Origin: Octopus sinensis
Taxonomy: Eukaryota
NCBI RefSeq assembly: GCF_006345805.1
Contig: NC_042999.1
Span: forward strand, 64,480,001-64,544,000
Direction: 5' to 3'
Length of the DNA stretch: 64,000 nucleotides
Made by a program: the position numbers and the translations under genes. Positions 7,461-56,608 of this stretch are shown here, in pieces (positions within the stretch are counted from its first letter, which is position 1; each line of letters opens with the position of its first letter). Under the pieces are notes generated by a model that made no database searches, was not told where the DNA came from, and saw only the letters and a list, made by a program, of their open reading frames with translations.

Positions 7461-8017
7461 TTAACGCAGAATGCTCTGATCATTGCTACGCGTCCTATTT
7501 ATTACTGGTCCTTTTTCTCCAAGTTCTCCTTCACAATTTGGAATGTTCATAAGGGCACCTGACGCCATTATATAAGGACCTCCTCCAAGTACATTCGGTA
7601 CATTCGGATCAAATGCCACTGGCAAGCCATTGAGGAAAGAACTAGCGTAGGAATGAGCAAAGATCGGGTAAGGCTGAGGCACTATCTGTTTAAAAGTAGT
7701 GTTAGGATGTTGCGTTTGGAGGCAGTTACTGGGATATGGAACATTAGGAAACATCATATGATGATGGTGATGGTAATGGTGAGAAGCTAGAGGCGTGTCG
7801 CTGAGAGTGGTGCTTGTCCCCCTTCCGTTTGTATCTGAACTGGTGCTGCATATAGGACGAGTGGGAATGCTTAAGTGAACAGCTGCTTGTTTTTGGAGTG
7901 TATTGACACCGTTAGCAAGAGATGATTCGCTGTAGAAATTCCATTGATCTAAAGAAGGCACTGCGGGTAACATCTGAGAATCCTGGACAATTGGGTTGTT
8001 GACATTGGAAAACGACA
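7461..8017 (-). CDS. repo: Repo-like homeobox gene, terminal exon 5 (Pro/Ser/His-rich C-terminus)
   Basis: Acceptor ctcctctctttcgtttcag|TG. The phase matches exon 4 (G+TG=Val), followed by 184 sense codons and TAA at 7461-7463. This is the non-repetitive ORF 7461..8045 of the track and includes SHHYHHHHH. Confidence 0.8.
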
Positions 8018-11000
8018 CTGAAACGAAAGAGAGGAGATGTTTCACTGATCAAATAATGTAGAAGACGAATATTAAAACAAAGTTAAAAAGTATGAGAAAA
8101 TGATGGTTGATTATGATCCTCTATGAGATAACTTGGCTGGCTAGAAACAATAACCAGTATCAATTTAAAGGGACAAGGATCCAATGAATTCTATTTTAAT
8201 GGAACAGTCTGAAACAATTTCATTTTTATATCGACGAACCGCTGACATCAAAGCTTTGGTTTTTTGTAAGTATGATTATGTACATGCATATTTATATATA
8301 TATATAAATATATATATATATATATATATATTATATATATATATATATATATATATATATATATATAATAATAGTTTAATCCAAGCAGAAAACACAAAAA
8401 ACAAAAAAAAAAACAACAGCAACGCGAGGACGTGGAACAAATAAAGTATTATTGGACGCTCAGGAAAGAAGGGAAGAAGGAGGGTGCCCCCTCGTTATCG
8501 AGTATGGCCATTGCACGAAGCTTAACTGTTACTGGTGCTGTGATCGAATGTGAATTTTTAGCCCAGCTAAAGATCAACAATGTCTTGTACAGAATTGGCA
8601 ACTAAAACCTTTACCGGTAATAGCTGGCTGTAGTTGTAACTGGGCTTCATGTACCTTTGCATGTCGTTTAAGTCCTCCTGCCGAATTACACTCTCTTCCA
8701 CATGCCCAACAGATATATATATATATATACACCTACATACATACACAAACACACACACACACACACACACACACACCGCATATATATAATAATAATATGA
8801 GGGAATATTATTCCAAACTTACAGGGAAAAATTCAATTTAGAAATACTAAATCAAATTTCACAAAATATAATATATATATATATAATCACACCACATTAT
8901 TTTATGGTTAATACCATAAAGATTTCTGGTGCATCTAAGTTAAGTACCGCATTCATGTGAATTCATTGTAACTCACTTGAATCTTAATTGTTTTTACTGA
9001 AATCATATATATATATATAAATTTGAAAAAACATCACCTTTTATCAATCCAATAATGAAAAAATTAAATTATACCATTTAGAAAAATTACGTCTTATAGA
9101 AAGATTAAATATAAGATAAAACATATAACAATGATTAAATAATGTGCAAAATAATAAATAAAACTTATATATTTGGTAATGTAGCTAGTTCTATAATCTC
9201 TGGAAGAGATGTAAGTAGTAACTCTACTGAAAAGTACTGTTTGTTGCCACTTCGAAATGGTTGTTCCGTATGGAACAACGTTACTACTCTTTTTTAACCC
9301 CAGCAGAACACCCCCTCCAGCGGGTTAACGACACAATATCTGTGTCTGATACATTGCATCTCCCATCTAGCGGCAACAAGGTCTGTAGTTCAGCTGGTTT
9401 CAGGATCTCATGCTTCTTCAGTACTGGTACACCTGCCCGCTGGAAATGGCAGTCGTTCGTCCCAGTTCGCAATATATAAATGAATAAGCGACACACAGAC
9501 CCTGATCTTGCAACAAACAAAGTTGTTTGTTCTACAATCTGCATAATATATATATATATATACATGTGTATATTTAAAGGGCTAAAAAACCACTAAGTGG
9601 TCAGCCGTATGCTAGAATTAGATCACCTACGATCAAACTACAAAGAAAAGAATGTTCTCTAGAGAAAAAATCACCGGACACTAGAACAATATGCGGGCAA
9701 GACAGATGAAAATTATATAAAAAACAAGAATTACTCGCAGACCGGCGGTTTCGCCTATTAACGAATGAATCACTTACGTAATCCCTCGTCCGTAGGCTCG
9801 TCAGTACGATCGTTCCAAAGGTAATATAATTTGTAAAACTAACCACCAGTTTTCCGTATAAAAACAGACACGTGCTTAGTTTCACCGATTACATTGGGGT
9901 TAATTTCAAATGTCTGAGTTCTGGCGCGCTAAAATTCCGGAAACAAAATCTGCAGTAAATAATTTACTGCAGTTAATGCTGCCTATTAGAGAACATATTT
10001 ATTTTAACATTTAAATAATGAGGGAGATAAATTGAATATTAATTTAATTAATATCAATTTAAAACCAGTAGCCTAGCATACAAAAATCTGAAAAATCAGA
10101 GAAAATTCTAATACATGTGTATATTAAAGTGCTAAGAAACCACTAAGTGGTCAGCCGTAATATAATATATATATATTATATATAAATATATATATATATA
10201 TATATATATATATATATATATATATATGTATATAAATTAGAGAAGAACCACCATGTAGCAATTCAACAATGATAAACTTAGATCATACCATATAGAAAAA
10301 AATTAAAGATATGATAAAATATTAACCTAGAACTAAATAAAGTACGAAATAATAAATAAATGGTATATAATATTCCCTATTATTATTATTATTATTATTA
10401 GTATTATTATATTATTATTATTATTATTATTATTATTATTATTATTATTTTTATTATTATTATTATTATATATATATATATATGTATGTATGTATGTATG
10501 TATATATATGTATGTATATATATATATGTATGCATATATATTTATGTATATATGTATGTATGTATATATATATATGTATATATGTATGTATATATGTGTG
10601 TATGTACGTGCGTGTATGTTTGTGTGTTTATGCTTTCATACTGCGCATACATTCCTATGACTATGTAATTGTGTTGGGTGCGCGGGCTGTGGAGTGAGGT
10701 GGGGAAACGACAGGGACGGTTGTCTGCACCGTAACGCGTGCGTACTGTGAGCACGCGACAAACACGTGTGTCCATGTGTCAGGAAACAAAAGCAACAAAA
10801 AAGGTAAAAAAAAAAGTAAAAAGAGAAACCCCGTAAGAGTGCTTTGTACTACTTACATTCACCAAAAACTGCCATTAAAAAACGTACAGCAACCACCAGC
10901 CAGCCAGCCAACCAACTAAACCCCTACGTGAGTGTTGTACAAATATGGCCCTTACGATTTGACACCTCGATTGATTCCTCTTTCTATCGTCCCACCTATT

Positions 11001-11226
11001 TAAGAACACTTAAATCTTTACTTTGTCCTCTTGTAAATTTATTTATCATGTCTTTATCATGTTTCCTCTTAGTTACCTGGCAACGCACACATTCTTGGTA
11101 TATTCTTTCCCGTTTGAGCCACCGAGAAAAGCATCACTCTATGCAGTCTACCCATCTGCTAGAAATAACAGTCAAGACTTCTTCAGATCACACAATACCG
11201 TCTTTAAAAAAAAATTATAAGATGTA

Positions 11227-11440
11227 CGAGGTGCTGACAAGTTCCTGCCTTTGAGTAAAAGAAAATATAGGAGTATTAGTTAATTATGATTTTATTCAAT
11301 AAATTCCCCTCTCAGATTCACACACTTATTGCAGAAGTCCTTCAATTTTTTCTAAGCCCTGTGAAAGAAATCGGAAGTTTGGGTCTCCAACCAGGCATTT
11401 CGCGACACCTTTAAAACCAAGAACTTCTCAGCACCCCTCT
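11227..11440 (+). mobile_element. Mariner-type MITE copy 1
   Basis: TA|cgaggtgctgacaagttcc ... gaacttctcagcacccctct|TA. About 215 bp, homologous to 11623-11843. Confidence 0.75.
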
Positions 11441-11622
11441 TATGTATGTATATATCTCTATCTATCTATCTATCTATCTATCTATCTATCTATCTATCTA
11501 TCTATCTATCTATCTATCCTATCTATCTATCTACATACATAACATACATCATATAATATATATATATATATATTATATATATATATATATATATATATAT
11601 TATATATATATATATATATATA

Positions 11623-54866: not shown

Positions 54867-55349
54867 TATATTTTGTCTGTATACATACATACATACATGC
54901 GGACATACATACATACATGCATACATACATACATACATACATACATACATACATACATACATACATACGTACATACATACATACATGCATACATACATAC
55001 ATACACATACACATACATACATACATATATATATATATATATATATATATATATATGCATTATTTATTTATGAGAATTCATTTGATTTAATGTACAGCAA
55101 CCCGTAGGACGCCAGAAATGACCCGCGTGGCTTAGTGACTAGTGTACTCGGCTCACAATCATAAGATCGTGAGTTCAATTTCCGGTGACACACCAGGCTG
55201 ATCACATAACGAGAAAATCTGACATAGCTTGAGGTAGATCCAGTTGGTTTCCTCGAACGTTTCCTCAACTACGTTGAGTGTTGGCTTCATCGCTTTGAAC
55301 CAGAGGCAACGAGAAATACACGCAGTGGAAACACCATTCCTCACCTGCT

Positions 55350-55866
55350 CCAAAAAAGGCCAAGGCTGTTTCAGCTGGAAGGAAGGTGATGGTGTCAGTC
55401 TTTTGAATTCAAAATACGTTGTATTTATTGACTATCTTCAAAAGGGCTACACCATCAATGGAAAGTACTATGCCAACTTGCTGAGGCAGTTATAAAAGAC
55501 TATCAAAACCAAACGCCAAGGGAAACTGAAGAAAGGGATCTAGTTCCATGAGAACTATGATCCAGCACACAAGTCTTTGGTTGCAATGTCTTCTGTGCGT
55601 GACTGTGTCTTTGTACTGGTTGATCAACCTCCCTGTTCTGATTTGGCACCATGTGGCTATCATATGTTCCCCAACATGAAAGGACACTTGGCCGGGAGTC
55701 AGTGTCGCATTGATAATGACGTCATATCCGCTGATGATATATCCACAAGTGTGAGTCATATCCATAAGTGTGTGGTGCGCAAAGGGAACTATGTTAGAAA
55801 ATAAACCTAATTGGTCACGTTCCATGAGTGTATCTTGGGCAGCTATGAACTATTCAGCCGATCCTC
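55350..55866 (+). mobile_element. Degenerate mariner transposase 3' fragment with right TIR
   Basis: VFIDYLQKGYTINGKYYANLLRQL ... PAHKSLVAM..VRDC..LVDQPPCSDLAPCGYHMFPNMKGHLAG with stops and frameshifts. Ends in gaactattcagccgatcctcg (TIR-like). Confidence 0.8.
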
Positions 55867-56520
55867 GCGCGCGCGCGTGTGTGTATGTGTGTGTGTTTCT
55901 GTCTTCATCATTAATAAAGCTACCACAAGACCAATACATAGTTAGACATTCATTCATAGTAGTTGTGTGCCAAACGTATATTCCTTTTATGACTTTCTAA
56001 TGAAGAAAAATCTCGGACGTTCGACCTGCTAGGAAATAAAAGCCAGATGTTCCTTCCATAAACATCCTACCCACTTAAAATGGAAGGCCACATTGACAAA
56101 TGTAGTCTGCGATAAAAGAATGGAATTGTCACGTCTGGAACGTCTTTGAAACTAAGTCTAAACGCTAATCTGCCAGCCCGAAAAATCACTCCGGCAAACA
56201 GTCCATCAATTCCAACGCCAATTCATCAACACCCCACCAATCAATACCACCACTCCAATAGTACTACCACTCCAATAACCCCACCCCACCATCCTACAAC
56301 TTTCCATACTATCGACGCCACCCCTGGCACAACCACCACCACCACCACCACCACCACCAAAACCCACCACCACCACCACCACCACCACCACTACCACCAC
56401 CACCACCACCAACAACAACATTAACTATGGCAGCAACTCTGTTATGTGGGGAATTCTTTGGTGTGAGACAGATGGGAAATAATATGCGACCTGGTGACTC
56501 TTCGGTGAAAGGAATCTCAC

Positions 56521-56608
56521 CTGTTCCACGTAGACCATTGTGGAACCTGCTGCGTGTAGTATAATTCCACTGAATATTATTAAAGGGATCATTGACGTTG
56601 TAGGGCAT
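56521..56608 (-). CDS. repo: Repo-like homeobox gene, probable exon 1 coding part (MPYNVNDPF...LRGT)
   Basis: Strong donor ACAG|gtgaga at 56521/56520 in phase 1, matching exon 2. ATG at 56608 has a purine at -3. The sequence is unique and non-repetitive. The frame stays open upstream to 56785, so the true start may differ. Confidence 0.6.

Follow-up and report, generated by a model that had tools for sequence, protein, structure and literature searches.

Octopus sinensis very probably carries a canonical ortholog of repo (reversed polarity), split by large introns and annotated under other names

We analyzed a 64,000-nucleotide stretch of the Octopus sinensis genome (the window) and found that its minus strand very probably holds exons 2 to 5 of a single canonical ortholog of repo (reversed polarity), the gene for the Drosophila pan-glial factor Repo (PMC11193209; PMC6123671). 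The window matches chromosome CM016861.1 (assembly GCA_006345805.1) at 100% identity and is the reverse complement of bases 35374-99373 of a larger genomic locus, L001. An original prediction, made from the letters of the window, had joined five stretches of this strand into a homeodomain protein. Indeed, these stretches do join with GT...AG boundaries, in phases 1, 2, 0, and 1, into a 933-nt open reading frame (ORF) of 310 aa plus stop. The best protein match to this 310-aa model is NCBI XP_029634248.2, a protein of 373 aa that is 100% identical over 91% of the model. We took exon borders from splice mapping of XP_029634248.2 onto L001, and its exons 2 to 5 proved to be exons 2 to 5 of the window base for base. 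Four of the five predicted exons therefore match exactly, while the predicted exon 1 is without support.

The homeodomain is divided among three of these exons. Coding exon 2 (46159..46249, minus strand, 91 nt) is identical to exon 2 of XP_029634248.2; it lies between the acceptor ttttag/TT and the donor CCG/gtaaga and encodes VPDCLKHDLKMDFRKLPDRSQDMQKRKARY along with 2 nt of the codon for R5, which puts homeodomain positions 1 to 4 and part of 5 at 46172-46159. Exon 3 (33662..33785, minus strand, 124 nt, from the same splice map) carries homeodomain positions 5 to 46, which comprise helices 1 and 2, the start of helix 3, and the LSESRVQ motif. Exon 4 (13269..13341, minus strand, 73 nt, likewise from the splice map) carries positions 47 to 60 (VWFQNRRAKWRKKE, 13341-13300) and then the Repo-type extension TPRKTILYPS. 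The last coding exon, exon 5 (7461..8017, minus strand, 557 nt, ending in the TAA stop at 7463-7461), adds a 185-aa C-terminal region with a DQW motif and a His-rich stretch, HHYHHHHH. As originally stated, exons 3 and 4 are absent from the ORF track, and the cause is plain: at 48 and 57 aa, their ORFs fall short of the 60-aa minimum set by default, and were missed for that reason.

The introns, all on the minus strand, are very large. Intron 1 measures 42,847 bp, of which the 3′ part, 17.75 kb, occupies 46250..64000 and the rest lies beyond the right end of the window. Intron 2 (33786..46158, 12,373 bp, phase 2) falls within the codon of homeodomain residue 5, intron 3 (13342..33661, 20,320 bp, phase 0) between homeodomain residues 46 and 47, and intron 4 (8018..13268, 5,251 bp, phase 1) 11 residues past the homeodomain. 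Since the annotated exon 1 is outside the window, the window covers only part of the gene: the coding sequence consists of five exons over 81.9 kb, with introns of 42.8, 12.4, 20.3, and 5.3 kb, and the annotated protein has 373 aa. These values replace the span of 49 kb and the length of 310 aa first proposed.

Family membership was judged on the homeodomain. Pfam recognizes one homeodomain in the 310-aa model (E = 5.6e-24) and, in the annotated 373-aa and 467-aa models, only a Homeodomain and no paired box. The residue at position 50, within VWFQNRRAK, is Q, and the Q50 paired-like homeodomain of the original prediction is thus present. For comparison, we used the classified paired (PRD)-class homeodomains in the supplement of Barton-Owen et al. 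2018 (PMC6118893). Over 60 positions, the octopus homeodomain shares 53 residues with Lingula Repo, 48 with amphioxus Repo, 47 each with fly and Tribolium Repo, and 46 with the best non-Repo sequence, an Arx. The fly protein differs at 13/60 positions (2, 3, 4, 10, 11, 15, 16, 18, 21, 37, 38, 39, and 59), where roughly a dozen differences had been stated, and nine of the 13 are in the N-terminal arm and helix 1, where most had been placed. Family hidden Markov models (HMMs) separate the PRD families better than raw identity does. The octopus homeodomain scores 134.5 bits with the Repo HMM, followed by Arx (119.6), Alx (112.7), Hbn (109.9), Rax (99.6), and Pitx (76.6), which ranks last among 17 families. 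The lead of Repo over Arx, 15 bits, is of the size seen when known Repo members are scored with an HMM built without them.

Individual residues point to the same family. The octopus homeodomain carries A23-P24 and, ahead of helix 3, SESRVQ. All Repo references have A23-P24; among 111 non-Repo PRD homeodomains, P24 occurs in 1% and A23 in 6%. Past the homeodomain, the octopus sequence WRKKE-TPRKT fits the extension [PT]P[RK]K, which is also found in arthropod, brachiopod, chiton, annelid, and amphioxus matches. When we searched 5.8 billion proteins, almost all of the top 120 matches proved to carry the AP motif together with WRK.E[PT]P[RK]K, and the best named ones are "reversed polarity" proteins of Tribolium, Bombus, Rhynchophorus, Arctopsyche, and Carabus. 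The Repo family signature invoked by the original prediction is real, because nearly all of these 120 matches carry it.

The exon-intron structure of the gene is shared across phyla. The Repo introns of the chiton Liolophura and of amphioxus are placed as in octopus, at homeodomain position 5 in phase 2, between positions 46 and 47 in phase 0, and 11 residues past the homeodomain in phase 1, and the 124-nt and 73-nt exons are common to all three genes. Tribolium Repo keeps the phase-2 intron at position 5. The comparison of this intron covered Repo genes. The octopus gene has very probably kept an ancestral bilaterian Repo exon-intron structure, with introns that have expanded to 5-43 kb.

We then consider the phylogeny, built as neighbor-joining (NJ) trees with 500 bootstraps from the 60 homeodomain residues. 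In the point tree, Repo and the octopus sequence together are monophyletic, and the octopus homeodomain clusters with fly, beetle, bee, Lingula, chiton, and amphioxus Repo. Its nearest neighbor is a Repo in 500/500 bootstraps, and in 404/500 (81%) it sits with fly repo within a Repo-only clade. An ARX-like gene of O. bimaculoides, separate from repo, falls in Arx. The predicted grouping with Repo among the PRD families is thus obtained, by NJ only.

Could the gene belong to another paired-like family (Arx/Aristaless, Alx, Hbn, Rx, or Pitx), with its Repo-like residues acquired by convergence? Raw identity to Arx (46/60) is near that to insect Repo (46-47/60), and the exact Repo clade is recovered in less than 50% of NJ bootstraps, but the Repo HMM leads Arx by 15 bits and Pitx by 58, A23-P24 and the TPRK extension are Repo-specific, and the intron positions and exon sizes are those of chiton and amphioxus Repo. 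Moreover, an Arx-like gene that groups with Arx is present separately in O. bimaculoides. Database names would also favor another family: the O. sinensis and O. vulgaris genes are called Pitx2 ("pituitary homeobox 2"), that of O. bimaculoides engrailed and ALX1-like, and that of Argonauta hians BarH-like 2. These four names contradict one another, as is expected from automated naming. Taken together, this makes membership in another family very improbable. Two families were considered by their own hallmarks and rejected. Pitx proteins have K50, the helix 3 sequence RVWFKNRRAKWRKRE, and an OAR motif, and the Q50 of the octopus protein rules this family out; Pfam finds no OAR in it. Arx/Aristaless proteins have QRRYRTTF, T23-H24, TEAR(V/I)Q, and OAR, and the octopus protein has KARYRTTF, A23-P24, SESRVQ, and no OAR. 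Judged from sequence, orthology with repo rests on several independent tests, all of them passed, and the repo identity originally proposed is supported by similarity, HMM scores, signature, NJ tree, and gene structure. The octopus origin that the original prediction gave for the gene is also correct.

The first exon is a different matter. All three Octopus annotations (O. sinensis, O. vulgaris, and O. bimaculoides) use a distal exon 1, which encodes aa 1-92 of the O. sinensis protein. It maps to L001 10001-10277, equivalent to window positions 89097-89373 and thus 25.1 kb past window base 64000, and its unique part has no trace within the window. Between O. sinensis and O. bimaculoides, this exon differs by substitutions and by an in-frame two-codon indel, with a ratio of nonsynonymous to synonymous differences (pN/pS) of 0.34. 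The annotated proteins have 373 aa in O. sinensis, 316 aa in O. vulgaris, and 467 aa in O. bimaculoides; relative to the O. sinensis start, that of O. bimaculoides is placed 96 codons upstream and that of O. vulgaris at an internal Met (MSFKSPS...). The frame of the exon also remains open on the 5′ side of the ATG used in O. sinensis (outside the window, at L001 9968-10277). The start codon is uncertain, since the annotations use different Mets of one exon and the upstream frame is open.

The original prediction had placed coding exon 1 at 56521..56608 (minus strand). We rejected this segment and treat it as intronic. It is in none of the three Octopus annotations, and in O. bimaculoides its counterpart has lost 19 bp, so that 69 nt ending in phase 0 are left, with a stop after splicing to exon 2. 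Could the 310-aa model nevertheless be a real alternative isoform of O. sinensis, in which this proximal exon has its own promoter and splices to exon 2? The segment begins with ATG, is open, and ends in a good donor, CAG/GTGAGA, in the right phase. Such segments are common by chance: over 17.7 kb upstream of exon 2, 107 ATG-open segments run to a phase-1 GT, and this segment is among only three of them with a GTRAG donor. Against an isoform stand the wrecked frame and phase in O. bimaculoides and an identity to that species of 73% inside the segment and 84% in the flanking intron. In addition, its 29 residues match neither other Repo proteins nor the Argonauta locus, where the 10-kb flanks end short of exon 2. 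We consider such an isoform improbable and keep the distal exon as exon 1 of repo.

The gene shows the marks of selective constraint. We determined pN/pS exon by exon between O. sinensis and O. bimaculoides. Exons 2 to 5 give 0-0.14 (0.12 for exon 2 and 0.14 for exon 5); exon 3 has zero nucleotide differences and exon 4 zero nonsynonymous differences. All five annotated exons are thus under purifying selection, at pN/pS of 0-0.34. Intact orthologs are found in O. vulgaris, O. bimaculoides, and Argonauta hians (exons 3 to 5 intact in Argonauta), and the C-terminal region encoded by exon 5 is 67% identical in Argonauta hians. When we searched the C-terminal 196 aa against the 5.8 billion proteins for decapodiform orthologs, only Argonauta hians was returned; the 185-aa C-terminal region, including the His-rich stretch, is recognizably conserved in octopods only.

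In the 373-aa protein, AlphaFold predicts three helices, spanning residues 128-140, 146-156, and 160-178, with a predicted local distance difference test score (pLDDT) of ~95; elsewhere the pLDDT is <60. The protein would accordingly be a three-helix homeodomain, split over exons 2 to 4, between flanks predicted to be disordered. The canonical DNA-contact residues R3, R5, V47, Q50, N51, and R53 are all present, as are W48 and F49 of helix 3. Q50 paired-like homeodomains bind TAAT-core sites and act as transcription factors. By family, octopus Repo would bind TAAT-core sites through helix 3 (V47, W48, F49, Q50, N51, and R53) and the N-terminal arm (R3 and R5), and would regulate the transcription of cell-type-specific targets. 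Outside the homeodomain, the TPRK extension and D(Q/R)W are the only motifs shared with other non-insect Repo proteins. Several of those proteins have an N-terminal motif resembling eh1 or the octapeptide (HSIEGILG, HAIDNILG, or FTVRDILG), and several have a C-terminal OAR-like motif, which in one (P0008) is above the Pfam threshold for OAR.

Several observations weigh against our reading of the locus as a functional, canonical repo. The phylogeny is NJ only, from 60 residues, and its support is moderate, with the exact full Repo clade in only 38-49% of bootstraps; such values are usual for 60 residues. Neither the eh1/octapeptide-like motif nor OAR was found in the octopus protein. An exon for the former was sought between annotated exon 1 and exon 3 by tblastn of 100+ Repo N-termini, which returned only low-complexity noise, and a regular expression for the eh1 motif found no match on the gene strand of L001. 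Automated annotation and cross-species conservation are the basis for exon 1 and every junction: we found no spliced transcripts, and the one unannotated contig of the protein cluster, Logan SRR11869390 from another octopod, is genomic DNA that has intron sequence before exon 5. The text of the O. vulgaris brain atlas contains neither "repo" nor "gcm," and its supplements, which we searched, contain no "pituitary homeobox," "pitx," or XP_029634248. Finally, the 2025 bobtail-squid atlas reports no clear repo ortholog in Euprymna berryi and argues for convergent glia (PMC12240821).

The missing motifs, the lack of spliced transcripts, and the silence of the brain atlas, together with very large, repeat-filled introns, might suit a decaying or unexpressed relic that is nonfunctional in octopods. 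This is scarcely credible for a locus in which every exon has an open frame and canonical splice sites in both O. sinensis and O. bimaculoides and exons 3 to 5 are intact in Argonauta, in which pN/pS stays at 0-0.34 and homeodomain exons 3 and 4 show no nonsynonymous change, and in which every DNA-contacting residue is intact. The repo of octopods is unambiguous and conserved.

This gene has been easy to miss because its small exons are spread over 82 kb. Its model is already in public annotation, hidden under the four wrong names given above. We found no named cephalopod repo in the literature we searched; the 2015 octopus genome homeobox survey was outside that search and may list the gene. 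A 2024 review has Repo absent from Lophotrochozoa (PMC11193209), a claim in conflict with homeobox surveys that list it in Lingula and oyster (PMC6118893). The absence of Repo from vertebrates, which the original prediction had asserted, agrees with the same review (PMC11193209), and no vertebrate Repo-type protein is among the best 120 matches. A 129-aa query made of exons 2 to 4 and the start of exon 5 returned gastropod, chiton, cnidarian, and many unnamed matches. No squid, cuttlefish, or Nautilus protein is among the best 120 matches listed per query. The decapodiform absence holds at the level of annotated proteins, the cephalopod genomes compared being those of Octopus and Argonauta, and it fits the E. 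berryi report. It could be a true loss or a failure to annotate tiny exons between huge introns.

Glial homology across animals is debated, and Repo is the textbook pan-glial factor of insects. In the annelid Platynereis, a 2025 cell-atlas preprint finds Gcm and Repo to be glia specific. Since Repo is pan-glial in the fly and Gcm and Repo are glial in Platynereis, the most likely role of the octopus gene, by family, would be in glial or glia-like cells; the original prediction had put a glial role forward as a question. If the canonical repo of octopods is indeed glial, the Gcm/Repo program may be ancestral to protostomes rather than convergent, and that program would have been lost or missed in squid; we regard this as a tentative possibility and on the whole doubtful. 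The gene family, the fold, and the mode of DNA binding are ordinary, and the value of the finding is in the annotation and in the glial test it enables: with the identity of repo in hand, glial expression can be checked directly in existing octopus single-cell data.

Repeats fill much of the rest of the window. A repeat of ~184 bp is dispersed across 17266-46015, often as arrays of two to three tandem copies in introns 2 and 3 (22142-22623, 35084-35426, 43833-44386, and 45386-45856), and it comes within 150 bp of the exon 2 donor. Its 25-bp core occurs at 17 sites on both strands with <=3 mismatches, where 0 are expected by chance, and it has no transfer RNA (tRNA) or Rfam match. This is probably a SINE-like (short interspersed nuclear element-like) or satellite element that helped enlarge the introns. 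The introns are also packed with long microsatellites, among them (TA)n, (AAT)n, and (TATG)n (20009-20708, 26687-26908, 40864-41077, 41785-42206, 59965-60273, and many others), which give rise to many spurious long ORFs rich in Y, I, and C on both strands; 32 tandem-repeat rows score >=150. At 770-2164 (plus strand), a 464-aa ORF with a YMDD motif matches Pfam RVT_1 (E = 3.4e-24); it is a retrotransposon fragment ~5 kb downstream of the repo stop codon. The ORFs at 28615-29145 (minus strand) and 51819-52277 (plus strand) have no significant Pfam match; in our impression they resemble the C-terminal part of ORF2 of non-LTR (non-long terminal repeat) retrotransposons. Rfam and tRNA scans of the window returned no RNA genes.

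Among known systems, the closest solved structure is that of the Drosophila Aristaless homeodomain (PDB 3a01 and 3lnq; E = 1.5e-28; 45/60 identical), and we found no Repo structure in PDB. Aristaless has the same predicted three-helix fold and the same DNA-contact residues as the octopus protein; as a member of the Arx family, it has T23-H24 and TEARIQ where octopus has A23-P24 and SESRVQ. Drosophila Repo is, like the octopus protein, a Q50 paired-like homeodomain protein with no paired box (47/60 identical), and insect Repo matches share with octopus a post-homeodomain extension of the form WRK.E[PT]PRK. The flanking regions of the fly protein are unrelated to those of octopus, and the fly factor acts downstream of Gcm. 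Octopus keeps three introns in or after the homeobox, whereas Tribolium, the sole insect gene checked, keeps one.

The canonical Repo genes of other lophotrochozoans were also compared. The homeodomain of Lingula anatina Repo, classified in HomeoDB style in PMC6118893, is identical to that of octopus at 53/60 positions, and Lingula and chiton Repo have the extension TPRK(T/N) and a downstream D(R/Q)W, as octopus does; octopus is without the eh1-like HSIEGILG of Lingula or HAIDNILG of chiton at the N terminus. The Liolophura sinensis gene, named "retina and anterior neural fold homeobox protein 2-like," has the same five-exon structure with its 124-nt and 73-nt exons, but its introns are far shorter: intron 1 is 7.4 kb, versus 42.8 kb in octopus, and introns 2 to 4 are 0.78, 0.11, and 0.54 kb, versus 12.4, 20.3, and 5.3 kb. 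In this chiton, two Repo-class genes stand in tandem on the same strand, ~2.4 kb apart (CM072731.1, 12,795,198-12,810,723), one canonical (P0006) and one divergent (P0231). We also looked around the octopus gene for a second Repo-like homeobox; 102 kb of O. sinensis and 72 kb of O. bimaculoides yielded none.

The divergent molluscan Repo-like genes, namely, oyster "Repo" and "Repo?/PRD-like," those of abalone and Gigantopelta, and the second chiton gene, form a sister clade to Repo. In 77% of NJ bootstraps, the divergent chiton copy clusters with the abalone and Gigantopelta proteins and with oyster "Repo?/PRD-like"; its introns are at the same positions. Gastropods and bivalves have the divergent type only, in the databases searched. 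The divergent proteins have AP at 23-24, as octopus does. They read PDV(M/V)TRE (the second chiton gene, PDVFTRE) where the canonical type has PDVFARE, and mostly end in WRKG., without the TPRK extension. By these features, octopus Repo is of the canonical type, and the pattern suggests an old molluscan tandem duplication of which octopods keep the canonical copy.

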